Part shown: piece after piece, positions 1-46,114 of the stretch
Layout of the letters: every line of letters begins with the position of its first letter
Position numbering within the stretch: position 1 is the stretch's first letter
Notes under the pieces: generated by a model
What the model was told of the DNA's origin: nothing
What the model saw: only the letters and a program-made list of their open reading frames with translations
Database searches by the model: none
Assembly: GCA_004431415.1 (NCBI GenBank)
Contig: QPMI01000302.1
Coordinates: 1-46,114 of the forward strand
From: Cyanophora paradoxa CCMP329
Lineage: Eukaryota; Plantae; Glaucophyta
DNA: 46,114 nt
Reading direction: 5' to 3'
Program-made: the position numbers and the translations under genes

Positions 1-12
1 CCGTACGCGGGG

Positions 13-2261
13 ATGCCGGTGACGTCGAACTCGCGGAGCGGGTCGGCCTCGTCGGCGACGTCGGCGCAGCGGCTCGCGCTGCTGAAGAAGAAGCACCCGC
101 AGCTCATCCGGCGCACGGACTCGGCGGGGGAGCGCCCCGGCGAGGACCCCGCCTTCGGCTACGCCCCGCAGGCCGAGTACGGCGCCGCCGGCCGCCGCGC
201 CGCCGCCGCCGCCGCCGCCGGCAACGGCTACGGCCAGCGCAGCGCGGGGCGCGGCTACCGCGAGGAGGAGGAGGAGGAGGAGGAGCGCGGGTACCGGCCC
301 GGGCGCCAGTTCCAGGAAGACCAGCCGGCGGTGGCGCGGCGGCCCGCCGCTCGCGCCCCGGCCTACGACTACGACGCTTACGACGCGCCCGACCCGCCGC
401 CCCGCCAGGCCCCGCTCGCCGCCCGCCGCCCGGCCAGCGGCCCTACGACGACGAGCCGCCGGCCGCCGCGGCGCGCCGCCCCGCCGCCGGCGCCTCGCGG
501 TTCGACGAGGACCAGCCGGCGGTGGCGCGGCGTGGTCCCTCGGGCGGTTCGATGCGCCAGTTTGACGAGGACCAGCCGGCGGTGGCGCGGCGCGCCCCGG
601 GGCGCGCCCCGCCCACGAGGATGAGTACGACGAGCCGCCGGCGCGGCAGCAGCCGCCGCGCCGCCCGCCCTGGCGCGGCGCCGCCGACGACGAGGAGGAG
701 CCTCCGCCGCCGCCGCCGCGCAAGGCGGCCGCGGGGCGCGCCCCCGCCCGGCCGCAGTGGAATGACGACGTGAGCGCGGGGGCGCCCCAGGACGACGACG
801 GGTACGGCTACAAGCCGACCGCCCGCGCCCCCGTCCGCAAGCCCCCGGCCCCGGCCGCCCGTGCCCCGGCGCGGCCCCAGTGGAACGACGACACTGCGTC
901 CGGCGGCTTCGACGACCCGCCGCCGCCCCCGGCCCGGCGCGCCCAGGCCCCGCCCAGCGCGCCGCCCCGGCCCGCGCCGCGCCCCGGCCCAGCGCGGGGG
1001 CTACCGCGCGAACGAATACGAGGAGGAGGAACAGGAGCCGCCGCGGCGGCAGCCGCCGCGGGGCGCCCCGCGGGGGCAAGCCAGCAGCGCTCCGCGCCGC
1101 CGCCGGCGGCGGCGGCGCGTTCCTCTCCGGACGACGACCGGCCGGCCGTGGCGCGCAACGCGGGCGGCGGCGAGGGCGGCATCACGGTCCGCGCCGCTCC
1201 TCACGGCTTGCCGCCCGACCCGCCCCCGCCGACGCCCCTGCAGGGCTTCTTCAAGAACCTCTTCGGCGGGGGCCGCCCCAGCTCGCCCTCCGCCGCCGCC
1301 GCCGTGGGTGCGCCGCCCGGGGCCTCCGCAGGCGCGGCGCCTGACGGGACGGGCAGGCTGCCTCCGGAGGCCTTCGAGGCGGCGACGGGCCCGCTCGTCC
1401 CCTGCCCGGACTGCGGCCGCAGCTTCGCAGAGGAGGCGCGCCCCGGCCGCCCGCGCCCCGCGCCCCGCCCCGCCCCGGCGTGACGTCGAGCAGGCGCTGG
1501 AGAAGCACAGCCGCGTGTGCCAGAAGGTCTTCCAGCAGAAGCGCAAGGCCTTCGACTCCACCAAGGCCCGCGTCGCCGGCACCGAGGCCGCCAAGTTCGT
1601 CGAGAAGGCGCGCCCGCCCCGCCCCGCCCCGCGCCCCCTCCCGCCCCGCGCGCCTTCCCCGCCGGGCTGACGGGGCGGGGCAGGCGAAGGCGCGGGAGCG
1701 GGAAGGGGCGCGGCCGGCGGGCGGCGGGCGGAAGGGGGCGAGCCTGGACGACCGGCCGGTGCAGGTGAGCAAGAAGGCCAAGTGGAAGGCCGACCACGAG
1801 GCCTTCCAGGCCGCCATCCGCGCCGCCCGCCAGTACAAGGAGGCCAAGGCCAAGGGCATCGACGTGCGCCGCCCGCGCGGCCCCGCTCGCCGGCTGCCGC
1901 GAGGCCGGGTCTCCTCTGAGCGGGGCGGGGGCAGGTGCGGGACATCCCGATGGCCCCCTCCGCCCCCGACGACCGCCAGCTCTGCAAGAACTGCGGCCGC
2001 AAGGCCCGCCCGGCCCGGCCCGCCCCGCCCCGCCCGCGCTGAGGGCGCCCGCAGTTCGGGGACAATGCGTTCGAGCGCCACGTGCAGCACTGCAAGAACA
2101 TCATCAGGCGAGTGCCCCTGTCCCCTGCCCGCCCGCCGTCCCAGCTGAGCCGCCGAGCGGCGCGCAGCAAGCCGAAGATGCTGGTGCGGGGCGGCGGGAC
2201 CTCTGTCGCCGCCGGCAACTCCAAGGGATTCATCCCCGGGGGCCCCCCGGGGCGTAGGTAG
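13..2261 (+). CDS. Zinc finger C2HC domain protein (ZC2HC1/FAM164-like), multi-exon
   Basis: Spliced product has LVPCPDCGRSFAEE|ALEKHSRVCQKVFQQKRKAFDSTKAR, KWKADHEAFQAAIRAAR and CKNCGRK|FGDNAFERHVQHCKNII, i.e. two C2HC fingers. Introns: 1187-1243 GT-AG, 1436-1493 GC-AG, 1608-1683 GC-AG, 1864-1934 GT-AG, 2004-2054 GC-AG, 2108-2167 GC-AG. The 5' low-complexity half has apparent indels; start uncertain. Confidence 0.85.
310..592 (+). repeat. Three coding copies of F(Q/D)EDQPAVARR (~32-bp near-identical units)
   Basis: gaccagccggcggtggcgcggcg recurs in units starting at 310, 501 and 561; related DDRPAVAR near 1130. Confidence 0.8.
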
Positions 2262-2391
2262 AGGCGGCCGCAGCGGCGAGCAGCAGGCAGCAGAGGCAGG
2301 AATGGCGTCCAGCTCAGAACACGAACCGCACACGCTCGCCTAGCCATGCACGTGGCCGTCTAGGGTGGGGCGCCGCTGGAGCCTCACGGGG

Positions 2392-3458
2392 TCACCTCCG
2401 CCCGCCCGACTGGTCGGTGCTGAGGCACTGCGCATGCGGGCAGAGGTCGGGTGCGGGACTGGCGTCGCCACGCAGGCTCCGCAGCCTCCCGGCCTGGACC
2501 ACGCACCCTGCCCCAGCAGTTCGCTTGCTTCGTCTTCGCCAGCAGCTCCGTCTTGAAGCCCTGGCGCTTGGCCTCGGCCAGCAGCCGCCGGTACGTGCCC
2601 TCTTCCATGTCAGGCCTCCGCGACAGCACGTACAGCTGCGCGTGCGAGCCAACCGGCGGGGCGAGCTGCGGTCAGCGGCCGCTTCGGGGGCGCCAGGAGA
2701 AGGCGCACCTGGTTCCGCTTCGGCTCGCCTGAAGCCAGAAGGGGCGCGCGCGTCGCGCGCGAAACCTCAGAGGGCAGCAGGCCCGAGCGCGCGTGTGCGC
2801 GGGACGCACCGATGAGGGCGTACGAAGATGTGTCGCAGGAGATGACCTGGAACGGCGCCCGGACGAGGCCAGCGAACGCCGACAGGACCAGCTTCCCCGG
2901 CGTCGCCGGGTTTGGGACCCGCCCCGACAGCTCCGCCTTCGAGGAAGTCAAATCAAAAGGCTAAGCAACTCGAGCTCAGTCACGTCCGCGCCTTGATGAG
3001 TTTCCCGTCAATGTTGTTCTTCCTGCACTCGTTACGTACGAGCAGCGTCCCGTCCTGCCTGAGCGTATAGTCGGCGCGCGCTGCAAGAGGAAGTGAGCCG
3101 CAGACAGACTGCAGCGCGGATCCCTGGATCCGGACGCACTACAGACGCAGCCGCGCTCGAAGAAGCGTCCGGGGTTCAACGGCGCGACGTTGTAGTGACT
3201 AATCTACGAGCGCGCATATAAGTGAGAGCGCCGCGGGCGCGCCTCCGCCAGCCGGCACCGCGGGCGCGGCGCTGGCGCTGGCCGCGGCGACGAGAGACAC
3301 TCGCCGGGCGCGGCGACGGCGACGAGACCTCTAGAGCAATGCGCAGAGGATACCTCGAACCATTCACCCTGGAAGCGCCGGAGGTCGAGCTTCGGGACGG
3401 TGTCGAGCTCGTTGGACGGCGCGGACTTCGACGAAGGGTAGCGGCCGCGCCGGATCAT
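2392..3458 (-). CDS. Lipocalin (Blc/ApoD/TIL-like), multi-exon
   Basis: TVPKLDLRRFQGEWFE|ISH (GxW motif), FFERGCVC|TRADYTLRQDGTLLVRNEC, PATPGKLVLS, YALIG|EPKRNQ|LYVLSRRPDMEEGTYRRLLAEAKRQGF. Includes a 20-nt microexon at 2709-2728. The last exon is tentative. Confidence 0.85.
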
Positions 3459-3588: not shown

Positions 3589-6500
3589 ATGGGCCTCCGC
3601 GACGTGTGCCTTGGCGGTGGCCCGGAGCTGAAGAGGCCGCGTACTGCGCCGGGAGCACTCTTGCGGCCCCCAACCGCGGCGGCGGCTAAAGACGATGCGA
3701 CGCCCCTGTCCAACATCGTGGTCGCCGTCCGGTTAGCCAGCAACCGCGCATGTGCTCTAAAGAGGCTGGGGACTAGCTCTGATCGTCCCTCCGCCGCAGC
3801 GTGCGCCCTAAGAACGCTCGGGAGGCGGAGAAGGACGACCCGCCCGTGGTGAAGGCCATGGACGAGCACGTCGTTGTCTTCGACCCCAACATCGCTGGAG
3901 TATGCTGACTTTGCAGAGATTACGGGTCCAGGGACTCGGAGGGCCTGACGCCGCATTCCCGTTGCGCAGGACGCGCCAGCCGCCAGCCGGAGGGTCCCAG
4001 GCTCACGGCGCAGCAAGGAGATCCAGTATGCGTTTGATCGGGTGTTTGGAGAGGACACCACGCAGCGCGAGGTGTACGAGGGGACGGCGAAGGGGCTCGT
4101 TGACTACGTGCTCGACGGTTACAACGCGACCGTGTTTGCCTACGGCGCCACGGGTCCGCCGCCCATCTCGCCCGGCTTCCGGTGCTTTGGGGATGCTGAG
4201 ATGCGAGGGGCGCGGCGCAGGCTCGGGGAAAACGTTCACGATGATCGGGAACGAGCAGTTCGGGCAGGGGGTGATGGTCTCGACGCTCTCGGACCTGTTC
4301 CAGAAAATCGAGGAGCGCAAGCTGGACGACGAGTACAACGTCCGCATTGCGTATCTGGAGGCGAGCTCCACGCCGCGCGCCTCGGCGGCCGCCGGCGGGC
4401 CCTGACGGGGGCGGGGCGGGGCAGATCTACAACGAGCAGATCCGGGACCTGCTGGACCCGCAGGGGGCGCTGAAGCACCCGCTGGAGCTGCGGGAGGACC
4501 AGAAGGGCGACACCGTCGTCAGCGGCCTCCACTACCACACCCTCAACTCGGCCGAGAAGGTCTTCGAGATGCTCGAGCAGGGCAACGCGCGCCGCTCGCA
4601 GTCCCCCACCGAGGCCAACCAGAACTCCTCCCGCTCCCACGCCGTCCTCCAGGCCCGCCCCGCTTCATCTTTCGCCCGCGCCTCCTGCCCCCCCGCGAGC
4701 GCCGCCGCAGATCCTCGTCGAGAAGCGCGCCCGCGGGGCCATCCAGCAGGAGGGCGCGCCCGCCGCTTCCTCCGCCCTCGCCCCTTCTCGCGTGCCGCTG
4801 AGGCCGCGCCGCCGCGCAGTGAAGCTCGGGAAGCTCTCGATGATCGACCTCGCCGGCTCCGAGCGCGCCGCTGTCACCGCCGTGCGCCGCCTCGAGCCCT
4901 CCGAAGCTTTCCCCGCCCGCGCGGCGCCGACGGCGGGGCGGGGCTCAGAACCGGGGCAAGTTGTTGCGGGAGGGTGCCAACATTAACCAATCGCTCCTCG
5001 CCCTCGGCAACTGCATCAACGCCCTCTGCTGCAACAAGAAGGCGCGCGGCGCCTCTCTTCTTCCGCCCCCACGCGGCGTCGAGCCGCCTCGCGCAGGGCA
5101 CGTTCGTCCCGTACCGCAACTCGAAGCTCACGCGATTCCTGCGGGTGCGTCGCCCCGCGCTCGCCGGCGCCGCGCGGGGGCCGAGGTGGGGGGCGCAGGA
5201 CTCGCTGGGGGGCAACTGCAAGACGGTGATGATTGCGGCGGTGAGCCCGTCGCAGCTCTCGTACGAGGACACGCACAACACCCTCAAGTACGCCAACCGC
5301 GCCAAGGACATCAAGACAAAGGCCCGCCCCCGCGCCCCCGCCCCCGGCGCCGCGCTCGGGGCGACGGGGTGCGGCGGGGGCGCAGGTCGTGGCGAACGTG
5401 ATCAGCGTGCAGGCGCACATCACGGAGTACCGACGGAAGATGGCGGACCTGCAGTCGCAGAACGAGGAGCTGCGGAAGAAGCTGAAGGCGATGGAGAAGA
5501 ACGAGACGGAGGCGGTGGAGCGGGAGCACTTCTCGCTCGCGCAGGCGGAGGTCGACCGCTACCTCAAGGCCTACCGCGACATCGCCGAGAAGACCCTCGC
5601 CGAGGACGCCGAGCGCCTCCAGGTGGGGGCCCCCGCACGCCCCCCGCACGCCCCCCGCGCGCCCCGCCCCCGCCTCACCCCGCCCGCCCCCGCGCAGCTC
5701 GACTTCGACGGCCACACGCAGGAGGCGGCCGTCTCGAAGCTGCGGGAGGGCCTCTCGGAGCCCGGGGCCGACGCCGCGCTCCTCGGCGAGCGCATCCACA
5801 TGGCGGAGCTGGCGATCCAGCAGCGGCGGCAGGCGATGCACCAGAAGGACACCGTGCTGCGGAGCCTGCGGACGCGCCTGGAGGAGGCGGCCTCGAACCT
5901 CCAGAAGCTCGTCGCCGAGTACACGACCTCGACCTTCACCCGCGAGCGCCGCGCCTACTTCGAGCGCGTGCGCGACCAGTTCGAGGGCGAGATCCGCCTG
6001 CAGGCCGCCCGCCGCGAGGCGCGCCGCAGCGAGGAGACGTACAAGTACGTGCGCGAGCACGCCAAGGCCCTCGCCGCCGCCACCAAGACCTTCCTCCACG
6101 GTCCGCCCCCTCGCCCTGCCCCGCCGCCGCCCCCCCGCCCGACGCCGAGCGCGCAGCCGGCGTCTCGATCTCGTCGCTGCAGCGGCTCGTCGACGAGTAC
6201 AACCGCTTCGCCATCCTCAACGCCATCCCCCCGCACAAGCAGCCCGTCCCCCTCCGCGAGCTCGGCACCGTCTTCCCCGCCGGCACCGCGGCCGCCCCTG
6301 CCCCCGCCCCCGCCCCGGCACCGCAGCCGGTCTCCTCCCCGCCGCCCACGGCGCGCAAGTCGCGCGGGGGCGAGCTGCTCGCAATCTCCGTGGAGGACGT
6401 CACGCCCTCGCGCCGGAGCCGCGCGCACCGCGAGCGCGAGAGCGCAGCGCCCGAGGCCCCGACGCCCTCCCCGCCGCCCCTGCGACGCGGCCGCCTCCCC

Positions 6501-7356
6501 GCGGCGGCCTCCCCGGCGCCGACGGCGGAGACGCCGCCCTCGCCGGCGGCCTCGCTGGCGATGCCCCGACGCCGACGCTGCAGGGGCCGGCCGCCGAGTC
6601 GGCGCGCCCGCCGCTGCGCGCCATCGTCCGCCTCAACAACTTCGTCGCCGAGGGCCTCCCGCCCGCCCCGAGAGGGACGCCGCCCGCCCCGCCCACGCCC
6701 CCGCCGCGCGCCAGCGCGACCCGCGCGAGGCCTACAAGCCCCGCGAGCGCGACCCCGTGCGCCCCGCCCCGCCGCCGTGCGCCGCCGGCCACCCCTGACG
6801 AGGACCGCAGACCCCGCCGACGAGAACTCGCGGGCGCTGGCGGCCGCGGTGAACGGCGGCGGCCTGCGCCGCATCCGCTCGTTCGCGACGGAGAAGGCGG
6901 GGGCGGGGGCGGCACCGGCCCCGCCACGGCCGGCGCCCTCGCCCTCGCGCAGCTCGACCTCGCCGAGTCCCCGCCGCGCCCCGCAGGCGCCCCGAAGCGG
7001 ATGGGCGCCCGCCGCCCGGCGCACCCCTCCCGCCTGGGTGCCGGCCCGGGCGCCCGGAGCCGTGCCGCCGGCCTCGCGCCGGCGACGGCGCGGAAGGAGG
7101 CCGTGCCGCCGGCGCGGCCAGCGACGGGCGACGCCGCGGCGGCCGGCGGGGCGCGGCGGCCGCCACTGAGCGCGAACAACATGCAGCTCGTCCTTGCCGG
7201 CCCGCCCGTCTTCGGGCCGGCATCCGCCCGGGGCCCTCGCCGCCGGCCGGCCTCATCGGCGGCGGCGCGAAGCGCGTCGCCCCGCCCGCCGCCTCCCGCA
7301 CACTCGCCGTGGGCGCCGAGCGGCACCCGGTCGCCCCGCGCCTCGCCGCCAAGTAA
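3589..7356 (+). CDS. Kinesin-8 family motor (KIF18/KIF19-like), multi-exon
   Basis: [40 protein letters not shown] (P-loop), [72 protein letters not shown]...[18 protein letters not shown], then coiled coil. Twelve introns mapped between 3732 and 6156. The Pro/Ser-rich tail beyond ~6500 has frame ambiguities, so the end is approximate. Confidence 0.93.
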
Positions 7357-25247: not shown

Positions 25248-25745
25248 CTCGGACCTGAGGGCTCGTCGGTGCCTGCTTCGAATTCGCCGCGGTACGTGTG
25301 CTGCAAGCCGCTTCGAATTCGAGTCCCCCTGAAGCTCGCCCCGTCGACCCTAGCTGCAGTGGGCCAACCCTGACACTAGAAGTCTAACGATAACGAAAAC
25401 CCAGCCTGAGGCACCAGTGGCCGACCACGGATCACGCGTTTAACGATTAACTTCTTGATTCACATTGGGGCGCGAGGTTGGAGGGAGCGAAGAGGAGAGA
25501 GAGTGGGGAAGGCGGCGCTAAGTAGGTACACTCCTAAATGTCGGACGAGGCACGGGCCGGGGGCCTCGACCGGACGCCGAGACCGGAAAAAGAAGATCAA
25601 TGGGGTGACGACCCCAGAACACGAGCTCCAACTGAGCACACGTGATGACACAGCGGTTGCCGGGAAGAAAGGTATGGGCAACCGCCAGAAGAGCCGCTAT
25701 TGGCAGTGGGTTGCAGCGCCCCCCACACAGTATCCTTGTGACGGC

Positions 25746-27228
25746 TTACTTGGCGCCTTTCCTCTTCTTCGCTGCGGGCTCCTCCTCGTCCTCTGCGATG
25801 CAGATCGGGCGACTGGGACACCGAGCGCAACACAATTCAAAGAGGGCGCACCGTCGTCGTCCCCATCCAAGTCCTCGTCTTCCTCGTTGTCATCGCCTTC
25901 TTGCGGCTCGAAGTCATCACCCTCCTCCTCCTCTTCCTCATCGACCTGCTCAATAAGGTTCAGCAAAGAAGAAAAGAGGAGTCGGCAAGCGCGCGGACCT
26001 TGGGATCGGCCGCGAGGAACGCTGTGCCGGGGTTATCCTCGTCGTCCTCCTGCAGGCACCGATCAGCGGCGCGAAGGAGGGCACATAAGCACTCAAGACC
26101 CGCACATCTTCCCCATCGTCCCCTTCCTCTTCATCATCCTCCTCTTCAACTGCGCAGAGAGATGCTCGATCAGTGACACACAGACAAAACCGCTCAAGGA
26201 GCCGATTGGGCATGCACGCTAGCTAAGAGCTAGGCTTTGCGTGTGCAGCTCACGAATACACGACGCACCTCCTGTGCCAGAGGGTCCTGCATCCTCCTCC
26301 TCCTCCTCGTTCTCCTCCTCTTCGCCGCCCGCCTCAGGATCACCGAGGTCTTCCGCTTCATCTAGGCATACATGCAGGAACGTAAGACCGCAAAACACAT
26401 GCGCGAAGAGGTCCGCAACTGCGCACCGCCATCGGCGTTTTCGCCATTGACCTCGTCGCCGTAGCCCTCTCCGCCCGCGCCCTCGTCTTCCTCCGATCGA
26501 TCCTCGTCCTCGTCGACCGGGTTGTTTTCCCTACCGAGGTGATCAGGAGCGGGGCGGCAAAAGATGCCGAGGCAGCGGACTTGTCGGCGTTGTCGAGGAT
26601 CTGGAGTGCAGGGAGCATGCTGAAGACCTTCTCGCGGAATCCCTCAATATTGCACACCTCGTTCGCCATCAGATCAAGGATCATCAGCTTGGGGAGATCC
26701 GCCTGAGCCGGACAAAGTGAGCGGGCTTCGCGGTAAGAGGACGCGGGTGATTCTGTGTTCCTGAACTTCTATCAAAGAAGACAAACCAGCGGCTTCAAAT
26801 CGTCCAGCGATTTGATGCGGTTCCCGCATAGTTTCAGGCTCTGGAGCTCGGCAAGGTGCTTCAGGTGATGCAGCCCGCCCGAGATCTTGTTGTCGTTCAT
26901 ACATAGCTGCGCCAAAGCCTCGAAATGAGCCGCAGGGATCGAGATGGTAGAGGACGCGAGTTTGAAATTCGACGAAGCCCCGAGCCTCCGGATAGCGCCC
27001 GATCCTTTCTAGAGACTAATATGGGCGCACCTCCTCCAGCTGGGGGAGATCTGGGAAGCCCTCGAGCGTGGAGATGGAGATGTTTGACAAAGAGAGAATT
27101 CGCAGATTCGTGAACTTGTCGAGGCCGACAACCTTCGCGCTCGTGCACTTGCCATCCAGATTGAGCTCTTCGAGGTCCTCGGGCGCCTGCCTCGCCGAGG
27201 CCGCCTCCGTAAGCGCGCAGGCCTCCAT
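25746..27228 (-). CDS. ANP32: Acidic leucine-rich nuclear phosphoprotein 32 family, multi-exon
   Basis: LEELNLDGKC, ISTLEGFPDLPQLEE|LCMNDNKISGGLHHL, LCGNRIKSLDDLKPL, LDLMANEVCNIEGFREKVFSMLPALQILDNAD (LRRcap), a long Asp/Glu tail, and terminal NLS PAAKKRKGAK*. Confidence 0.92.
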
Positions 27229-27348: not shown

Positions 27349-29030
27349 ATGGCCGCGTTCGTATCGCTGCAGTTGCGGGCGCCCACATGGCCAGCGATCA
27401 GCACGCCTCCTCGCGCTCAGCATGCGGCGTGCTTCAGGAGACGTAGCGGACCTAGCGACGCCGTCCGTCCCACCGGCCTCGCAGCGCCACGGATCGGCTT
27501 CTTCGGGGACACGACGCGCAAGTTCGGGGCATGGACGACGCGGTCCTTGCGAGATCGTGCAGCATTCGTGCGGCCGTTCAGGCCACACGAGACGCGATGT
27601 ATGGAGAGCAAGGCCACACCAGAGCCGCCCGGAGACGGCAGGCCCGCTCTACCCGCGGCGCTGCAGAGCGTGGTGGACTTCCTGCGCGCAGTAATCCCGA
27701 AGAAATTCTTTGGCGTGAGCGGCTGCACCCCTCGCTGCGCGCGAACGCCGTCTGACCGCTTCCGGCCCGCCGCCCAGTTCCTGCCGAGGCGGCGGACGCT
27801 GAGCACGATCGGCGTGCTGATCGTAGCCATTCTAATCATCTTTCTCGGAGGATGGTACTATACCGCGGCGATCGCCGCAATGCAGGCGGTCTGCCTGCGC
27901 GAATACTTCGCCCTTGTCAAGGCGAAGGGCTACAGCCCCACGGTGCGGGCGCCTGCGGCGGGGCTTCCGCCGCTCCCTCAGCGGCAAGGCAGGTGCGGAC
28001 GACGATCCTGGCGTCGTTGGTGCACCTGGCCTCGGCGCAGGCCTTCCCCATGTACTCGGACGGCTTCATCGCCCTCGCCGGCATGTTCATCATCTTCTAC
28101 CTCCTCGTGCACCCCCACGCCGCCTGCCGTGCCCGCGCCCCATCTGCCGCGAGCGAGCGAGCGCGCCGCCGGCGCAGCTCCATGGCGATCGCCTCGCCAC
28201 CATTGCCGACCTCTCCGGCTCCATCCTCGGCCTCTTCTACCTCGGGTGACCCCGTACCCCCCTGCCCGCCTCCCCCTCCCTATCCGGCCGGGCGAGCTGG
28301 GGCGGGGCGGCAGCTACTTTCCTGGCTTCGTGGTCCGGCTCCGGAACCTGGAGCAGCGGGAGATGAAGAACTTCCCGTTCGCGGGGTACTGGCCGCAGAC
28401 GGCGGCGGAGTGGAAGCCGGCGCTGTGGCCGCGGGGCCTGCAGGCGTCCTTCCTGATGATGCTCTGCATCGCCGCCTCGGACATTGGCGCCTACATCATC
28501 GGCAAGTCCTTCGGCCGCACCAAGCTCATCACCAAGATCTCCCCCAAGAAGACCTGGGAGGGCGGTGTGCCCCGCCCTCCTCCCTCCTCTGAGCCCCGCA
28601 CCGCGCCCCTCCGAGCCGCCGCGCAGCGTGTGGCGGCTTCGCGAGCGCGATGCTCATCGGCGCTGTCGGTTTCTGGGCCTACGCGTGGCCCGGGGGGCCC
28701 CTGCTCGGCGCCCTCTTCGGTGCCCGCCGCTTCCCCGGGCCGTCGGCCGGCCTGAGCTCGGGCGGGGCGGGCAGGGCTGACGATGTCGGGGGTGGGCTTG
28801 CTGGGGGACCTCACCGAGTCCCTCATGAAGCGCGACGCCGGCGTCAAGTGCGCCGCCGCCGGCGAGCCGGCGCCCGGGGCGCTGAAGCCGGGCGGGGCAG
28901 GGACAGCGGGGACATCATCCCGGGGCACGGCGGCATGCTCGACCGCCTCGACTCGTTCATCTTCACCTCCCCCATCGCCTACTACTTCGTCACCCTCCTC
29001 CTGCCCCTCTTCGCCGCCCTCCGCAAGTGA
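27349..29030 (+). CDS. cdsA: Plastid-targeted phosphatidate cytidylyltransferase (CDP-DAG synthase, cyanobacterial type), multi-exon
   Basis: ASDIGAYIIGKSFGRTKLITKISPKKTWEG and GDLTESLMKRDAGVK|DSGDIIPGHGGMLDRLDSF signature; N-terminal MAAFVS... Arg/Ser/Thr-rich transit peptide. Confidence 0.95.
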
Positions 29031-32819: not shown

Positions 32820-35800
32820 ATGGCGACGTCGAGCTCCTCGTCCCCAGCGCTCGGAGATAGTGCAGCTGCGAGCTCCTCGTCGCAACCGGGGGCTTCAGCC
32901 ACCTTGACTGCTGCGTCTCTTGCAGCCGTCGCCGGGCGGCCTGCCTGGCGCCCTGCCTCCCCCAGTTCATCAAGTGGAGCGTCTTCAGATCTGGAACCGT
33001 GGCCTTCGGCTACAGATGACGCCACAGCCGCGCCGTGTACAGACGCCGCAGCCGCAGCGGACGCGGCCGGCGGGGACGCGCCGCCCGCGGGCGCGGCGGC
33101 TTCGTCGGCTGCAGATCGCGACAGCTCGCTGCCGTCCGCTGAGGGGAGCGCCCCTGCTTCCGGTGCTCCGAGCGATGAGCCGGCGGCCGGCGAGCCACTG
33201 CCGCTCTCGGCGGCTGCCCTGTTCACCGTCGCGAGCCGCGCCGGCATGTTCGGAACAGGGCCGATACAGCCGGTCGGACGCGGGGGCGGGGCCGCTGCGC
33301 CGCCTCTCCATCAGACCGCGCCGGCGGTGACCACCGAGATAGTCCGCGCCGCTCTGGATGTAGAGGAGGCCGAGCTGCTCTCCTCGCTCGAGCCGGCCCC
33401 CGGCGCTGGCGCCGACCCCAACGCCGCGCCGGTGCGCCGGCCGCGAGCGCACCCTCGCTCGCCGCGCCCTGAGCAAGGCGCAGGCCCCGCAGCGGGCGCC
33501 GCGGCCGCAGTCTGAGGGACCCAGCAAGCGACCCAGGACGGAGCCGCCGCGCCCCGACGGCCCCGCACCGGGCCCTTCTGCGCCGCCCGCGCCCCCGCCG
33601 CGCGCCACCCCGGCCCTTCCCGCTCGCCGCGCCGCCCCGGTTTGTCCCGCCGGCCGCCCCGTTCCGCGCCCCCGCTGGCGATCCGAAACTGGCGCTGGCA
33701 CAGGGGAAGGGGAGCGGGCCGCAGCAGACAGTGGGGCGGCTGGCGGCGCAGCTGAGCGAGGCGCAGCTGGCGCGGGCGACGGCGGAGGGGCGGGCGGCGG
33801 AGCTGGAGCTGCGGCTTCGGGAGGGCGACGCCGAGCGCGAGCGCCTACGCGCCGAGCTTGCCGCCCTCCACGCCCGCCTCGAGGCCCCGGCCCCGCATCC
33901 GCCAGCCCGCCCCCGGCCCCGCCGCCCCCGCCCCGGCCCCCAAGGAGAGCGAGGAGCTCGAGGCCGAGCGGGAGCTACGGGGCCTGCGGGAGGCGGAGCT
34001 CGCGGTGGAGCGGCAGCGGGTGGCGGAGCTGCGGCGGGAGGCGGCGGCGCGGGAGGCGCGCCTCGAGCTGCTCGCGGGGCGGGCCGGGGAGGCGGAGGCG
34101 CTGCGGGCGCGCCTCGAGGACGCGCTGCGCGCCCTCGGCGACCTCCAGCAGCGCCTCACCGCCGCCGAGGCCGCCGGGGAGGCGCAGGGGGCGAGCCCGC
34201 GCCCCCTCTCGCCCTCGTTCCCCTGTTAAAGGCCGGCGCAGGATCCCCGGGCAGCAGCATCGAGCGCGGGGGCGACTGGGCGAGTGGCGGTGGAGCCAGG
34301 CCCAGCGTCAGCGGAGAGGCACCGGCACGCGCGCAGCAGGTCGAGCACGGGAACGGCGTACGACCCGAGCGTGGAGGCGGCAGAGGCGAGCGCGACAGGG
34401 GCGTCACCGAGTGCGGCGGCGGCGGCGGCGGCGGCGGCAGAGCAGCGCGCGGCGGCAGCGGAGGCGAGCGGGAGAGGGCGGCGGTGGCGGGCTGGGACCA
34501 GCTGCAGGGCATCCTCGCGGCCTCGGCCCGCCGCGACCGCGAGCTCATCGCCGCCCTCGAGCAGGCGCCCGCCCGCCCGCCCCCCCCCCCCCCCCGCGCC
34601 CCGCCGCGGCCGCGGACGAGGCGGGAGCGGCGCGCAGGAGCTGGCGTGGACGCGGGAGCGGGTGGAGGCGCTCACGGCGGCCGTCGACGAGGCCCGCGCC
34701 CTCTCCACCAAGGCCCGCCGCGCCCCGCCCCGCCACGCCACGCCGGCGCCGGCGGCAGCGGGGTGACGGGGAGGGGGGCAGTACCTGCTGCGGTCGGCGG
34801 AGGCGGAGCGGGGGAAGGCGGAGGCGGGGCGGGCGGCGGAGGCGGCGGTGGAGGACGCCGCGCAGCAGCGCATCCAGCTCATCTCCACCAACGTCCAGTA
34901 CCAGCAGGTCCTCAAGCGCATGTCCGAGGCGAGCACCCGCGCCCCGCCGCCCCGCCCCCCTGCCCCGCCCCGCTGACGGGCGGCGCGCGGGGGCTGCCGG
35001 CAGATGAGCAACCAGATGGCGTGCTCGGAGCGGTTCGACGAGGAGTACCTGAAGAAGCGGAGCAGCGGCGAGCTGCGGGAGATGCGGGGGCGGCTGAAGC
35101 AGCTGCGCAGGCGCCTCAAGGAGCTCCTGCGCGCCGCCATCTTCAGCGAGTCCGAGCCCTTCCACTGCGTCCGCTGCCGCGCACGGGCCCGCCCCCCTTC
35201 CCCCCCGCCCCGCCCCCGCCCCCCCCCCCTCCGCCCCCGTCGCGCCGACGGGGCCGCGCAGCGCCCGACCTTGGCGCGAGCCTCCCTCCAGCCCTGCGGG
35301 CACCCCGTCTGCGTGTGCGTCCCGCAGCGCCCCGCCCCCGCCGCCGGCGTCGCGCCGGGGCGACGGCGACGGCGGGGCGGGTGCGCAGGGACCGCGGGTG
35401 CGCGCAGCAGATCGCCGTGCACCGTCTGCCGTGCCCCCAGTGCCGCATCGCCACCGCCGGCTTCCTCCGCGGCGCCCCTGGAGACCCGCCGCCCCCTCCC
35501 GGCGCCGCCCCCACCGGGCTCCCCGCCCCCGCCGCCCCAAGCACTGCACGTGCGGCGTTCGGTGCCGCCGCCGCCTCGTCGGCGGTCCCCAGCGCACCTG
35601 GCCCCGCACCAGCAGCCTCCGGCGCCCTCCCCGCTTCGTCCGCACCATCCCGTGCCCCCCCGACTGCCCCGTCACCCGGAACCCCGGGCGCCGTGCCCGC
35701 CGCGCCTCGTGCACCGGGCGCCGTGCCCGCCGCGCCTCGTGCCCCGGGCGCCGTGCCCGCCGCGCCTCGTGCCCCGGGCGCCGTGACCGTGGCGTCTGGC

Positions 35801-36715
35801 ACCCCAGGCGCTGCACCTGCGGCGTCTGGTACCCCAGGCGCCGTGCCCGTGTCGTCCGGTACCCCAGGCGCCGTACTCGTGACGTCTGGCACCCCAGGCG
35901 CTGCACCTGCGGCGTCTGGTACCCCAGGCGCCGTGTCCGTGGCGTCCGGTACCCCAGGCGCCGTACTCGTGACGTCTGGCACCCCAGGCGCTGCACCTGC
36001 GGCGTCTGGTACCCCAGGCGCTGCACCTGCGGCGTCCGGTACCCCAGGAGCTGCACCTGCGGCGTCTGGTGCGCCAGGCGCTGCACCTGCGGCGTCTGTT
36101 ACCCCTGGCGCTGGACCTGCGGCGTCTGGTGCCGCGCCCGCGGCGTCTGGTGCCCCAGGCTCCGTACCCCTGGCGTCCTCTGCTCCGTCCACCCCGGTCC
36201 CGCCGCCTACTGTCCCCGTCGCTCCATCACAGCCGCCACCCAGTGCACCCGCCTCGTCCCAGCCGCCCCGTGCCCAAGCCGCGCCGTCTCGGCGCGCCGC
36301 CGTCCCCGGCAGCGGTACGCAAGCCAGGTCGCAGCGGGCCGCCGCCTCGGCGCCTCCGCCCGAGCCGCGACCTCCGGCGGCCTCCACGAGCAAGAGCAAG
36401 CCCTCGAAGCGGCAGCGTGCGGCCGCACACGAGTCGGGGCAGCCGAAGGAGGTCGTCCGGGGGCCTGCAGGGAGGAGCCAGCGCAGCGAGCAGCGGGGCC
36501 CCGGGGCCGACGAGGCGAGGCAGCCTGGGGTGAGCGCGGCAGTGCAAGCGGGGCTCCCGGAGGGCGCCATGCCCCAGTTCTTCCCTCCCTCGGGCACCCT
36601 CATTCCCGGCAACGTGCTCCCGTCCGCGTGGAATGCAGCTGCCGGCGCCTGGCCGGCCACCCCCTGGCTCCCCATGACCTGGCCCCCCCATGGCCACTGG
36701 CCTCCCGCCCTCTGA
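32820..36715 (+). CDS. Coiled-coil + C3HC4 RING finger protein with Pro/Ala/Gly repeat tail, multi-exon
   Basis: Long heptad region (GRLAAQLSEAQLARATAEGRAAELELRLRE...); spliced RING CVRC...LQPCGHPVCV|DRGC...CPQCR; intron-free last exon of ~1.3 kb. The join across 33430-33730 was not resolved. Confidence 0.72.
35682..36160 (+). repeat. Coding minisatellite, 30-bp unit (PGAxPAASGT / PGAVPAAPRA), ~15 copies
   Basis: Units ccccgggcgccgtgcccgccgcgcctcgtg and accccaggcgctgcacctgcggcgtctggt; 90-bp higher-order duplication at 35811-35900 / 35901-35990. Confidence 0.95.
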
Positions 36716-40300: not shown

Positions 40301-43300
40301 GTCACACTCGTCGCCCCCGTGTCGCTCTCCCTGCCCCGCCCCCCGTCAGCGCCCCGCCGCCCGGCCTGGCACCGGCCCCACCCGCGCCGGGGGACGCACG
40401 CCGCCTTGCCCTTCTTTTGCTTGCGCCGCGAGGCCCCGCGCTTCTTCTCCTTCCGCCCGCCGTGCTTTTTCCTCGCCTTCTTTTCGCCGGCGCCGCCCTC
40501 GCGATCGCCGTCGGACTTGGGGTCGGGGCCGCCCTCCTCGTCGCTCCCCGCCGCCTCCTCCTCGGCCGGCTTCTTGCGCTGCAGGCGCAGCCGCCGCGTG
40601 CTCCGCGAGCGCGCCCGGCCCCCGTCCGAGTCCTCGTCGCCGCTGGCGGCCTCGGAGCTGCTCGAGGCGGAGCCGCGGCGGCTCTTCCCGCCCTCCTCCC
40701 CGTCCGAGGCCGAGGCGTCCGAGCCGTCCTCGTCCTGCGCCCTCTTGTGCGCCTTGCTGTAGTGCTTCGCCACCTGCTTCAGGAGGGGCCGCGGGATGCC
40801 CGAGAGGATGTCCGAGACGCCCCGCATCGTGATCCGCACGTTCTTGAAGCTCGGCCTGCCCCGACCCGGGCCCGTCACCCCGGCCCCCTCTCGCCGCCCG
40901 GCCCGCCGCGCGCGCAGAGCGGGCCCCGGCGCACCGGAAGACAAAGAGCGCCTCAGAGATGAGGGTGCAGATGGAGACGCAGCAGATGGCGAGCAGGACC
41001 CTGCGCGCAGCGCCGAGTGAGTCGAGAGGGCACGCCAGGCCGGGCCGCGCCCCGCGGCTCGAGGGTCGCGATCGAGGAGAGAGAGGGCCCTCTTCGAACG
41101 CTGCCGCCTCGAAATGGAGCTCGAGGCGGGGCCGCGCGGCGCACCACTTGGCCTTCTCGATGACGCCCATGACCTCGTCCTCGTAGAGGCCGGCCCCCAC
41201 GTTCAGCTCCTCCAGGATCCCGAAGAGCGCTGCGCCCCCGAGCCATCGCTCGCTGCCTCTGCTGCCCACGCGCCGCATTCTCCAAGGGGCGCCAGGGCGC
41301 GCGCACCATTCTGGAAGACAAACTTCACCTCCTTGATCTTCTGCAGGTCTGCGCGCCCGCCGGCCCGTCAGCGCGCCGCGCGCACGCGCCGACGCCTTGC
41401 GCGGGGCGGGGCGCGGGGCCGGACCCCTGAAGTTGTCGGGGTGCATGAGGGAGATGCGCCTGCAGGCGATCATGATCTGCGGGGCGGGGCGATGCTCGCG
41501 TTCTGCATCTTTCGCGCGTGATATCGATATGATGAGGCTCTCTCTGGACTCACGGCGTTGCCGGCGTCCCACATCGACTGCCGCTCGTGGATCTCTGCCC
41601 CGTGACCGTCAGAGGAGAGGAGATGGGGGGCGCGCGGGGCGGACCGTAGATGGGGGGTCCCGGGAAGAACTTGATGATGTCGGCGTCTGGTTGGCGCCAG
41701 TACTCCACCAGCGCCGGCGTCGTGCTCGGCGGCATCCCCGTGTCTGCGCCAAGAGACGACCGGGCAGCGCTCAGAGGGGCCCAGCGCCACACCCGACCCG
41801 CAGAGCAGCCTCGCGCAGGGCTAGGCGGGTGGGTAGCGCCGGCGGCGGACCCTCGTATCCGAAGCTGCGGGCCCGAGCAGGGGGGCGGGGGTGAGGAGGG
41901 GGCGGGGGGCGGGGGTGGGGGCGGTGCGGGGCGGGGGGCGCGGGGCGCGTGCGCACTAGAGGCCGCGGTGGTCGTAGGAGAAGTCCTTCGAGCGGAGGCC
42001 GACCTCGCCCGCCCAGTAGCTGAAGCGCCCCGTGTCTGCCCCAGCGGCACGTGCACCCCCCGTGAGGGGGCGGGGTGCAGGGGGCGCGGGCGAGCGGCGC
42101 GCCGTTGCCGAGGGCGGAGAGGTGCATCCAGCGGATCATGTTGTTGACGGCGACGACGCGGCGGCGCTGGAAGGAGAGGAAGCGGAGGCGCTGGCTGGCC
42201 TGCGTGTACTCGACGAAGAGGAGCTTGACGGCGATGAACATGGCGGTGGCGAGGGCGGCGAGGAAGAGGAGGCCGACGACGACGCCCCAGAAGAGCCTGC
42301 GCACGGCGCGCGTCTCGTTCGCCCGCATCTTCAGCTCCTTGTTCCCCGCCCGCTTCCGCGCCAGCGCGCTCGACGAGGCCCCTGCCGCCCGCCTCAGCCG
42401 GGGGCGGGGGCGGGGCGGGGCGGGGCGGGGCGGGGCGGGGCGGGGACCGGAGGAGGCGGACTCGGAGACGGAGGCGGACTCCTTGGCGGAGGGGCCGCCC
42501 CCCGCGCTCTGCGACTGCGACTGCGACTGCGACGCCGAGAGGGACGCCGTCTTCGACTCCGACTCCTCCACCTCGTCTGCTTTCTGCGCCCCGCCCCCCT
42601 CGGCTCGCGCCCCGGCCCCCCGCCCCGCCCCGCCCCCGCTGACCATGAAGTAGAGCTGCGCCCGCGCCTTGTCGTTCTGCCCGCCCCCGCCGCCCCCTGC
42701 GCGTCAGCCGAGGAGGAGGAGCGGAGGAGGCGGAGGGAGGGCGGGATGTGGCGGGAGAGGAGTAGAATTTCGAAGCCCAATTTATAATTTCGAAGGCTGG
42801 AGGGGCGGGGCCGGGGCGCGCCATGCACTGCTCGAGGAAGGCGGCGTAGGAGCGCAGCAGGATCTTCGAATTGCTGTACCCTACGCACGCGCCCGCGTGA
42901 GGCCGCGCCGGCGCTGCTTGCGCCGCGGGCGCTGGGGGGCGGACGCTTGATGAGGAGGGCGTAGACTTGATCGGCCTCCTTCGCCGTCTGTGCGATGTCC
43001 GCCAGCCTGCGCCGGCGCCCTCAGACGCGAGCGAGGGCGGGCCGGGGCGGGGCGGGCGGGCCGGCGGGGGACGTCGTCCAGGGCGCCCGCCACGTGCAGG
43101 TTCTTCTTCGCGAGGCCGACCCTGCCCCCCCGCCCCGCCCTCGCTCCCCGCACCCCCGCCCCCCGCGCGAGGCCGGCACCAGAAGGCGCGGATGAGCTTG
43201 ATGGTGCGCGTGTGGCCGGTGCGGGCCTGCGGGGGGCCACATGTGTGAGCGGGCCTGCCGGCTTCACGGCTCACGCTCGTGCGCGCGGGGGCCGGCGCGC

Positions 43301-46093
43301 CTGCTCGTACTGGCGCTTGGCATCGGCGCTGCTGAAGAGGTCCGCCGCCGCGCCCCCGGCCCCGCTCGCCGCGTGCACCTGCGCCTGCCGCTCCCAGCTG
43401 CCCCGCGCGCCCCGATCCGTGAGGGGCAGAGGGGCACTGGGGCGCTGGGGCGCTGGGGGGCGGGCTGCGGGCCGCACAAGAGTTTCGTGGAGTGGAGCTC
43501 GTAGCGGTAGTCGATCGCTGCGGCGGCGCGGCGTGAGCGTCGATCGCGAGGGCGGGGCCGGGGCCGGGGGCCGGGCGGGGCGGACCGGGCTCCTTGCGCC
43601 AGCCGTTGCGGATCTCGGCGGAGGCGGCGTTCGGGTTGTTCGCGAACGACTTGAGCACGTGCGCCAGCTGCCCCGGCCCCCAGCTCGCCCCCGCAGGGGC
43701 GCTGCGAAGGGCTAGGGCCCGGGGCGCGGCGCCGGCCGCACGATGATGTGGACGTAGGCGGAGGCGGGGAACTGGAGGAGGGCGTTGCGCAGCATGAGCT
43801 CGGCCTTCTGCACGGCCGCCGGCGAGTCGTCCTCCGTGAGGAGCACCCGCACCGCCAGCTCCGCCTCCGTCGGGCTGCCGCCCCCTCAGCCCCCGCCCGC
43901 CCCGCCCGCAAGCCTCGCGCGCGCGCGCGCCTCTTGAACTCGAGCGACTCGACCTCTTGAGCCGCCGCCAGCTTCCCGATCTGCCAGTACCGGAACTCTG
44001 CGATTTCGAGCCGTATGCAATTAGAGGCGGCTCGGGGCCGAGAGCGCGCTGGGGGGGGGGGTCGCCGGGGCGCGCGCACTGACGGCGGCGGCGGCGGCGG
44101 CGAAGGCGAAGCCGGCGAGGGCGGCGGCGACGCTGGAGGCGAGCACGCGGAGGGCGTCGTCGCGCTTGCCCACCGACGTCAGCACGCACGACGCCAGCGC
44201 CAGGTACGTCCCCGCCCCCAGGAAGCCGCCCCGCTGCGCCCCGACGCCGCCGCCGTCAGTGGCGGCGGGGCGGGATTGGGGAGGGATGCGGGCGGGCCAT
44301 GTAGTTGAAGGCGGGGCGGTAGGAAGGGAGGTGGGAGAGGAGGATGCGGAAGGGGAGGGCGGTGCAGGCGAGGTAGAGGATGCAGACGATCGTGCTCTCC
44401 TCCGCGACGACCACTGAGGCGGCGCGTGAGCTCGAGGAGACCGAGGCGGCCGCCCCCGCCGCCGCGTGGAGGGAGACGGACCGGAGGCGGCGACCATGAG
44501 GAGGCGGCCGAGGGCGTAGGCGGCGTGGAAGCGCCCGTGGGGCCGGCTCTCCCAGTCCGGGCAGTGCTGCGCGTGCGCGCCCCGTCGGGCGGGGCCCCGG
44601 CCCCGGGGCGAGGGGCCGCTGGCGCTGGGCGGGCACGATGTGGTTGTGGCGGAAGAGGAGGAAGAAGAAGAGGCTCGCGAGGACGAACAAGGCGAGCGTC
44701 CCCGCCGCCACCGCCGCGTGCACCGTCTGCCCCCCCGCGCCCCCGACCTCCGTCAGCAAGCGGGGGGGGGGGGGGGGGGGCGGCGGGGCTCGGGGGGTGC
44801 TCGGCTGCGGCGCGCCCAGGCGAGGTCGAGGCACTTGAAGAGGGCGGGGGAGGTCGGCGCGCCCGGCAGCAGGTCGTCCTGTCCGCACGAGAAGACCGAC
44901 CCGAACACCTTCCTGCGCGCCCCCGTCGCCACGAGCCCTCCGCCCAGGCCGGCGCGCGAGGGGACCGATTGCGAGAGCTCGCGAGCTCGAGGGCGGGATC
45001 GCGCGCGCGCACAGGTAGGGGATGTAGATGCCGTAGAGGCAGCCCTGCGCGCCGCATCGGCCCCTCGGACCGACGCCGCAGCGGAGGGGGTGCGGCCAAG
45101 CGGGGGCGCCCGGCGGGGACGGGCGGGGCGGACGCGGGCGGCGATGCTCATCCAGATCTGCACCTCCCGGCCCTTGTTCTTCTGGAGGCGCAGGACGTAG
45201 TAGAGAAATGAGACGAGCACGAAGAGCGTGATCCCGAAGAGCGCCCAGAAGGTCCGCTGCGCCCCGTCCGCCCCGCTCGCCCCCGCCCCGCCCGACAGAA
45301 AGGGGGGGCGGTATGGGCGCGCCGAGAAGGCAACAATCTCGTGCTGGGTGAAGAGGGCGTATAGGTCGATCCAGCGGAGGAAGGGCCGCGTCACCCCCGC
45401 CGCGAACCCTGCTCCCGAACGGATGCGCCCCCGGCCCCCTCGCGATCGGTTGATCGCAGCTCGATCGCGATCGCGAGTGGGGCGGGACTGCAATTGGGCG
45501 CGGCAGGCCTAGGGGGCGCGGACCCGAGGTGCGGCCCATCACGAGACAGAGGAGCTGGATGCCGTCCAAGATCGCCCAGAGCTGTGAGGCCGCCCCGCGG
45601 TGAGACCCAGGGGAGCGCCGCAGGCGGCGCTAGCGCTGGGGCGGCGCGCGCCGGCGCCGGATATCGATCCGGAACGCCGCCGAGCGTGCGCGCACCACAG
45701 CCAGGTACTGTTCCCGCCGGTTGTTGTATTTCTTGTTGCTGCACGCGGTCGCTCGCTGCATCAGCGCCGGTCCGGCACGGGCAAGGGGGGTCGGGCGCGG
45801 CCATCCAGTGCAGCGCTAGCGCCAGTGCAGGGCCGACCTGATTTCAGTCTGCGTGCGCGAGACGGAGAGGCGTGCGGTCAGCCGGCCCTGGCACGAGGGA
45901 CATCCGAGAGTGGGCGGGGCGGGGCGGGGCTTACGAGGCCGACTTGGACTGCAGGAGGTGGGGCCAGGGCGCGGGCGGGGCGGGCGGGGCGCGGCTGGCG
46001 TTAGTGCCGGGACGAGGCCGTCGCCGGCGCCGGCGCTGGGCGATCGCGCCGGCCTCGCCACGCGCACGCACCCGAGAAAGTCGCCCTCCATAA
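37381..46093 (-). CDS. Large polytopic membrane protein of the Tiny macrocysts TmcB/TmcC type (5' end beyond window)
   Basis: N-terminal TM bundle (LDGIQLLCLV, SRPHGRFHAAY, LPSYRPAFNYMRGG), helical repeats (LLQFPASAYVHII; YSNSKILLRSYAAFLEQCM|NDKARAQLYF), further TM/loop modules (YWRQPD..SMWDAGN), an acidic/Lys-rich linker, and a C-terminal TM followed by ILKMVPKDV. Dozens of short introns. Confidence 0.72.
45838..45948 (-). other. Two consecutive microexons (14 nt at 45935-45948; 11 nt at 45838-45848)
   Basis: Each is flanked by CAG|...|GT with an upstream branch motif (ctaac, ctgac). Using both gives the open frame LWRATFSVQVGLTEISNKKYNNRREQYLAVLWAILDG. Confidence 0.75.
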
Positions 46094-46114
46094 CTGCGCA
46101 TGTGCATGCGCGGG

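Follow-up and report, generated by a model that had tools for sequence, protein, structure and literature searches.

In the glaucophyte Cyanophora paradoxa CCMP329, synonymous codons turn from G-ending to C-ending along the length of exons. We analyzed this pattern over a single stretch of 46,114 nucleotides (GenBank assembly GCA_004431415.1, contig QPMI01000302.1; hereafter the window), which includes a gene for a kinesin-8 (KIF18/19-like) protein in which a sequence-only reading of the DNA had proposed it. The measure was G versus C at four-fold degenerate sites in 98 internal exons, which belong to 14 genes and lie on both strands, and the intron set comprised 113 mapped introns. First exon halves contained 558 G and 334 C at these sites and second halves contained 182 G and 708 C, so that the share of G fell from 63% to 20%. 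The half-to-half difference of 0.42 compares with 0.013 ± 0.022 after shuffling within exons, a distance of about 18 standard deviations (SD). All eight codon boxes were concordant; the pair TCG:TCC, for example, went from 46:9 early to 23:49 late. A mild amino acid shift was also seen along exons, with Gly and Val early and Phe and Lys late.

The G-to-C flip at silent sites is real and strong. It bears out the earlier proposals that silent codons turn from G-ending to C-ending along exons and that a second layer lies over the genes at silent sites: every exon named there flips (Table 1), the effect extends to all boxes in the 98-exon set, and the comparison of skew with exon position that had been called for, run within the window, gave a profile that is not flat. 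The additional point that the pattern reads the same on both strands is correct but contributes no evidence, because the reverse complement of G-then-C is again G-then-C.

The flip was present in every flanking-base context, being somewhat larger where a CpG dinucleotide is created (log odds 2.1-2.3 versus 1.5), and it persisted where no splice decoy arises (log odds 1.75). Avoidance of decoy donors or CAG acceptors was ruled out as the cause, since the effect stays where no decoy is made. A purine/pyrimidine version of the pattern was likewise rejected for Cyanophora, as A and T ignore the blocks (p = 0.56, few sites).

Gene models and feature map

The kinesin exon at 4425-4652 matched one database protein at 100%, EukProt EP00741 tig00001284_g8001.t1 from Cyanophora paradoxa, whose relatives carry the names kinesin 18/19. 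In a spliced alignment, this protein matched exactly from 3589 onward, including exons 4425-4652, 5199-5321 and 5386-5622, with GT-AG and GC-AG introns of 54-89 nt. The same introns were skipped in spliced contigs from three sequencing runs guessed to be RNA, and the borders agreed within a 2-nt AG ambiguity. The model is firm up to about 6280, and its 3' part is low-complexity sequence with probable single-base assembly errors. Between 6496 and 7229, independent DNA and RNA-like contigs hold a single extra C or G at eight places. Because these contigs hold the extra bases, the assembly probably carries one-base deletions in stretches rich in guanine and cytosine (GC-rich), which casts doubt on the published 3' end of the kinesin gene model.

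Elsewhere in the window, genes were annotated by a small gene finder, without any positional term in its coding model, and exons were kept if their splice signals were clear and the protein was plausible. RNA support is limited to the kinesin gene and a portion of the first gene, the positions of several start codons are approximate, and Pfam confirmed the reading frame of the kinesin, CdsA, PIG-M, hydrolase and UPRT exons. The published C. paradoxa genome is GC-rich, with about nine short introns per gene (PMC6704402).

It could be objected that the flip is an artefact of exon selection, gene models or amino acid repeats, given that the models besides kinesin come from our own gene finder and curation and that single-base assembly errors occur in GC-rich stretches. 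We give this almost no credence: the effect stands at about 18 SD in all eight boxes and is also present in the independently annotated kinesin gene, the coding model contained no term for position, the block tests left out same-box pairs, and most GC-rich comparison loci (described below) have at most weak block structure.

Table 1. Features of the window that bear on the G-to-C wave. Ratios are four-fold G:C counts, first versus second exon half; signed values are intron skews, 5' then 3'.
Feature	Position	Strand	Observation
Kinesin-8 (KIF18/19-like) gene, host of the finding	3589..7356	+	EukProt match, spliced alignment, Pfam Kinesin on two exons
Kinesin 5' part, exons 1-4	3589..4360	+	Block structure weak or none; silent sites richer in A/T
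GC-AG intron, C-to-G	4361..4424	+	Half skews -0.22 then +0.38; RNA-like contig
Exon, G block then C block, switch near 4502	4425..4652	+	11:6 vs 3:19, p = 0.002; change point ±7 nt
Four short exons and five introns	4653..5198	+	C state through introns 4653-4710 and 4754-4819 and exon 4711-4753
Exon, G block then C block, switch near 5277	5199..5321	+	10:2 vs 2:5
GC-AG intron, clear C-to-G	5322..5385	+	-0.46 then +0.44
Exon, 164-nt G block then 73-nt C block, switch near 5550	5386..5622	+	14:1 vs 7:13
GT-AG intron, C-rich throughout	5623..5697	+	-0.52, -0.62
CdsA (cytidylyltransferase) exon, switch near 28459	28314..28564	+	17:4 vs 4:17; Pfam CTP_transf_1
Exon of long membrane-protein gene, switch near 44168	44080..44233	-	16:4 vs 1:21, p = 5e-7
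Ser-rich exon, switch near 42498	42448..42583	-	10:2 vs 3:14
HSCB last exon			12:1 vs 3:10
LamG gene last exon			10:2 vs 1:10
456-nt exon, internal G-C-G-C-G about 150 nt apart (by eye)	40400..40855	-	Interior block test p = 0.006-0.01
First gene's long coding stretch, very sharp G and C blocks, internal C-to-G switch	1..384	+	Interior block test p < 0.002

Sharp switches coupled to exons

The flip takes the form of a switch between two states. In a sharp switch model, the G share is 0.79 before and 0.10 after a switch that lies at 0.46 ± 0.19 of the exon and is about 1% wide, and, with the same number of parameters, a smooth gradient that includes an intercept for each exon fits worse than this exon-specific switch by 28 units of log-likelihood. 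The bias did not fade gradually from the ends of exons toward a core free of it; the cores of long exons are blocky, as seen in the interiors of exons longer than 330 nt (p < 0.001). By the Akaike information criterion, the switch position is described by the relative position in the exon (2032) or by both ends (2028) far better than by the distance from the acceptor or the donor alone (2233 and 2160), which rules out a fixed distance from either site alone.

G-to-C flips fall inside exons in 73 of 75 cases. C-to-G flips are found in introns (39), just inside the exon at the acceptor (about 20) and deep in exons (about 13, at 42-222 nt from any acceptor); exon 40400-40855, for instance, holds C-to-G switches with no intron there. 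The state continues across splice sites, the skew of the intron 3' end correlating with that of the next exon start (rho 0.34) and the exon end with the intron start (rho 0.40), and last exons flip in the absence of a downstream donor (57:49 versus 21:74, p = 6e-6). Median lengths were 78 nt for the G block and 108 nt for the C block, and the median G-to-C spacing of 183 nt exceeds the 151-nt median of the exon plus intron unit. One C block together with its intron showed no compensation with the position of the next switch (rho -0.05). Some elements depart from the simple course. About 10 of 84 exons are wholly C or wholly G, and exon 4711-4753 is skipped by the wave, because the C state continues through it and through both adjoining introns; exon 5698-6100 has a mixed start and reaches its G block later, and the intron upstream of the Ser-rich exon (42643-42584) is G-rich throughout.

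The sharpness of the switch, the C-to-G flips within exons, the continuity across splice sites, the flips of last exons, the blocky interiors of long exons and a spacing longer than the exon plus intron unit argue for the chromatin-linked DNA polarity that is weighed below.

Confinement to the distal gene body

The wave sets in 400-800 nt past the start codon, a confinement that the sequence-only reading had missed. Relative to shuffles, the variance of local skew was 0.97 up to 400 nt past the start codon, reached 1.7 at 400-800 nt and lay between 1.6 and 3.6 farther on, and the ratio was larger distally in all 12 genes having both parts; for the kinesin gene, it was 0.66 in the first 600 nt versus 1.65 past 800 nt. 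Between genes no wave was detected (variance ratio 0.88-1.07), the spacers being short promoter and terminator DNA that allows a limited test. Over all genes of the window, GC content is 0.66 in the 400 nt that follow the start codon and increases to 0.77 past 800 nt; at 1.2-4.4 kb, the sense strand has a net bias toward C (-0.10 to -0.16). The share of A/T at four-fold sites drops from 12% to 1-3% along genes, which constitutes a 5'-to-3' ramp in the GC content of third codon positions. An ANP32-like acidic leucine-rich gene (25700-27228, minus strand; likeness judged by eye) has a GC content of 59-62% throughout and carries a weak wave only.

An onset beyond the 5' region fits published chromatin domains and would run parallel to them, in keeping with a chromatin-linked polarity. 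N6-methyladenine (6mA) lies near the transcription start site in AMT1-encoding species, in a survey that included C. paradoxa (PMC12695648), and 5-methylcytosine (5mC) increases in the 3' direction along expressed genes of C. paradoxa (PMC12344493).

The same distribution could instead reflect a transcription-linked DNA structure, in which the blocks would cap G-rich nascent RNA (R-loops, G-quadruplexes) or set pauses that time co-transcriptional splicing. The restriction of the wave to transcribed distal gene bodies, with none between genes, and the net C bias of the sense strand are consistent with such a structure, and GC skew in human genes is reported to be tied to R-loops and pausing (PMC3787257, PMC4617957). 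However, it would predict avoidance of G rather than blocks of 79% G, and it offers no reason for G blocks to be phase-locked to acceptors, making it a clearly unlikely explanation.

Introns, splice sites and RNA structure

The 5' half was C-rich in 95 of the 113 introns and the 3' half G-rich in 54, with the mean skew crossing zero near the branch point. The course suggested earlier, from C-rich to G-rich with a switch near the branch point, was upheld for the C-rich start and for the location of the average switch, but a G-rich end was present in only these 54; in the kinesin region where the finding was made, four of eight introns are C-rich throughout. GC donors occur in 39 of the 113 introns, and acceptors lack a polypyrimidine tract and have a CTGA/CTCA branch motif about 22 nt upstream. 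Donors lie in the C state in 78 of 98 cases and acceptors in the G state in 76 of 108, compared with 58% and 42% of the sequence, and the last 40 nt of exons of at least 90 nt contain 3-16% G only.

These associations point to a possible splice-site polarity code on the RNA, in which C-rich sequence would mark the donor side of an exon and G-rich sequence the acceptor side. It would be read by single-strand RNA-binding proteins of the poly(C)-binding and G-run-binding types and would compensate for GC donors and the missing polypyrimidine tract in introns of about 85% GC. The tight coupling of G-to-C flips to exons, the states of donors and acceptors, the scarcity of G at exon ends and the scaling of block lengths with exon length are all in line with such a code. 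In addition, the share of GC donors rises from 17% in the first 700 nt of genes to 41-50% at 700-2000 nt, where the wave begins, and an intron is richer in C at its start if its donor is GC (p = 0.01). Nevertheless, selection anchored at exon ends would not predict a sharp switch at a variable mid-exon point, and flips also occur in the interiors of long exons and in last exons. Some exons remain in a single state, half of the introns never become G-rich, C-richness at exon ends did not differ before GC and GT donors (p = 0.46), and related waves are found in near-intronless genomes. A splice-site code of this kind, with its readers and its compensating role, would account for the exon-length scaling and the link to GC donors and not for the sharp mid-exon switch or the internal flips; we regard it as a real possibility but lean against it.

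The sequence-only reading had further suggested that G halves pair with C halves in the RNA, forming exon hairpins or looping out introns. The composition permits helices between G blocks and C blocks, and the ends of single introns can look complementary. However, pairing failed in all three controls. Native exons had no folding gain over synonymous shuffles, the comparison that had been called for (60 exons, mean difference in folding free energy -0.01 kcal/mol, p = 0.81), and windows of introns ±30 nt had none over G/C shuffles (82 introns, p = 0.57). In five pairings, native arms were no more complementary than arms exchanged from one intron or exon to another (p 0.23-0.97). Switch positions also vary widely, and the arms are not balanced. 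RNA pairing is thus highly improbable.

A proposed chromatin-linked polarity of DNA

The best reading of the wave is a chromatin-linked polarity of the DNA in nucleosome-sized, exon-coupled units, which we hold tentatively, at a little short of an even chance. The distal gene body alternates between a G-rich and a C-rich state wherever it is free to vary, at four-fold sites and in intron interiors, and each of the two states would correspond to one half of a chromatin unit. Exon sequence would be covered by a nucleosome whose two-fold axis lies near the G-to-C switch, and the C-to-G switch would fall in the linker, where introns would tend to sit. A sharp, context-independent and antisymmetric skew that crosses splice sites would most simply be the imprint of a two-fold symmetric DNA-bound unit. 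Waves in intron-free DNA of other eukaryotes and the palindromic base profiles of yeast nucleosomes (PMC4422121), both described below, also speak for this reading. The polarity could be written by strand-asymmetric damage, repair or conversion in a genome with A/T almost purged, or by selection for a polarity read by a remodeller. Because the units would follow exon-intron architecture rather than a fixed lattice, short exons would sometimes be skipped, and long ones would stretch or hold a second cycle.

Several observations weigh against such units, chiefly the scaling of the blocks and the weak wave at 5' ends. G and C blocks both lengthen with the exon (slope about 0.5), most exons of 230-280 nt contain a single switch, and 10 of 56 G-to-C spacings are below 140 nt, too short for the centers of neighboring nucleosomes unless these placements are in error. 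In the window, autocorrelation has a trough at 90 nt with no return peak, the peak periods of individual gene pieces are broad (140-380 nt) with no fixed period, and the regularity of switch spacing does not exceed that expected from exon structure (p 0.3-0.6). Moreover, nucleosomes are usually best positioned at the 5' ends of genes, where the wave is weakest.

With no return peak, a broad spectrum and spacings explained by exons, the fixed nucleosome or linker phase that had been proposed was not seen in the window. What stands of the earlier DNA-level proposal is the sharp switch, the carry-over across splice sites and the flips of long exons; a fixed phase and a clear CpG peak do not. A fixed nucleosome lattice with methylated linkers of the Dnmt5 type, in which C-to-G switches would be CpG-dense linkers every 160-180 nt, is very unlikely. 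Pairwise distances between switches have a weak maximum at 165 nt, which could speak for it, as could the somewhat larger effect where a CpG is made and a true 175-nt wave in another eukaryote (locus L056, below). The 165-nt maximum, however, recurs after permutation of the relative switch positions across exons (p 0.31-0.65), CpG density across C-to-G switches is 1.2-1.7 per 10 nt without a clear peak (observed/expected 1.0-1.2), and no CpG periodicity was found in the window. Methylation in C. paradoxa is also described as DNMT1/DNMT3-type, mainly in repeats and silent genes (PMC12344493). A fixed lattice of 160-165 nt was rejected for the window, where nothing beyond exon structure was detected.

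Comparison loci in other eukaryotes

The comparison set consisted of 80 kinesin-8 loci from metagenomes. The GC-rich loci L023, L045, L052, L054, L058 and L065 showed at most weak four-fold blocks, with a short-range autocorrelation below 0.1 versus 0.29 in Cyanophora. Because most GC-rich comparison loci show at most weak blocks, high GC alone does not produce the wave. A contig of a marine eukaryote with 62% GC (L056, MDSY01057078.1) showed a sharp 175-nt G/C period at four-fold sites (p < 0.0005, from about 310 sites only) with no clear CpG period. This period sits in two intron-free stretches, 1154-2185 and 2380-3420, coding for ATG3 and kinesin-8.

A wave of 400-480 nt at four-fold sites was identified in gene-dense, nearly intron-free contigs, namely L001, L060 and two syntenic relatives of L060, L081 and L083. 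L025, L066 and L082 carry this wave as well. In L081 and L083, A tracks G and T tracks C. The phase is partly conserved between orthologues (rho 0.27-0.46 for two genes, about 0-0.1 for kinesin), whose four-fold sites are only 35-45% identical, and it may be tied to the start codon. On the basis of in-frame 15-nt GT..AG inserts and of Blepharisma and Stentor as the nearest named relatives, L060, L081 and L083 probably belong to heterotrich ciliates. Because L056 and the L060-type contigs show them, silent-site G/C waves can exist without introns. Their kinship with the Cyanophora wave is one of likeness only, and a common origin is not claimed.

Other genes of the window

Two convergent genes, a zinc-finger gene on the plus strand and a lipocalin-like gene on the minus strand, have their ends no more than about 300 nt apart at 2165-2543, and the 3' untranslated regions (UTRs) may overlap; overlapping 3' UTRs are reported for many genes of the C. 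paradoxa genome (PMC6704402). At 35690-36160, tandem Pro/Ala/Gly-rich coding repeats with A/T above the surroundings lie toward the end of a gene with coiled-coil and zinc-finger-like character. The long membrane-protein gene at 37381-46100 on the minus strand has about 47 short introns and bears a TmcB/PAS-type resemblance by eye; a homologue search with one of its exons gave no match.

Relation to known systems and significance

The Cyanophora wave is kin to other position-dependent compositional codes in coding DNA and differs from them in base pair, size, location and exon coupling. Yeast nucleosomes have palindromic, asymmetric base profiles within open reading frames that bias codons and amino acids (Quintales et al. 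2015, PMC4422121), and Cyanophora likewise has a palindromic, strand-antisymmetric profile within coding DNA, to which a net sense-strand C bias is added. The yeast signatures concern mainly A/T, are modest, emerge from averages over tens of thousands of nucleosomes and are anchored on mapped dyads, whereas the Cyanophora wave is one of G versus C, visible in single exons (0.79 versus 0.10), exon-coupled and known here from sequence alone. A signature of the yeast type would be expected between genes as well as in coding DNA, which was not the case in the window, as far as the short spacers permit a test. In Tetrahymena, DNA-guided nucleosomes are likewise accompanied by an oscillation of base composition in coding DNA. 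It changes synonymous codon use and amino acids and is a wave of GC content with 3-4% amplitude and a period of about 200 bp just downstream of the transcription start site (Beh et al. 2015, PMC4617968). The Cyanophora wave, in contrast, is a G-versus-C skew, far larger and absent at the 5' end.

Codon skews at exon ends, reportedly described by Parmley and Hurst in 2007 as mild, purine/A-rich, roughly symmetric and gradually decaying, share with Cyanophora the dependence of synonymous choice on splice-site position, whereas the Cyanophora pattern is antisymmetric, two-state and sharp. Algae with Dnmt5 likewise have GC-rich, compact genomes whose sequence is shaped by nucleosome linkers. Huff and Zilberman are said to have noted C-to-G composition changes at linkers in 2014, an unconfirmed lead that could lower the novelty of the present wave, and introner introns were reportedly found inserted in linkers by Huff, Zilberman and Roy in 2016. 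Methylation in Dnmt5 algae is confined to linkers, as a secondary account confirms (PMC5728721). In contrast to these algae, neither a nucleosome-repeat periodicity nor clear CpG clusters at C-to-G switches were found in the Cyanophora window, and its methylation is described as of another type (PMC12344493). No description of the Cyanophora wave was found in a literature search, which is weak evidence given gaps in the literature covered. New here are the restriction of the wave to the distal part of genes, the test for a sharp switch and the detection of waves in intron-free DNA of other eukaryotes.

Two unrelated lineages with few introns show related waves, which suggests that the phenomenon is broader. 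In many microbial eukaryotes, gene bodies might bear a two-state G/C polarity code that is under selection, has a lineage-specific wavelength (exon-scaled in Cyanophora, 175 nt in L056, about 430 nt in the heterotrich-like contigs) and is read by a chromatin or co-transcriptional factor. In Cyanophora, the code would jointly define nucleosome and exon units where the 5' chromatin marks end; this generalization is speculative, and we consider it rather unlikely. Four-fold sites usually count as close to neutral. In the window, position determines whether they carry G or C, the odds between the two states being about 34 to 1. Because position has this effect, work on codon bias, synonymous substitution rates (dS) and gene prediction in glaucophytes will mislead unless the wave is modelled. 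Since the signal is visible in single genes, the old question of whether chromatin and splicing overlay coding DNA with a second code, and which of the two leads, becomes directly testable.

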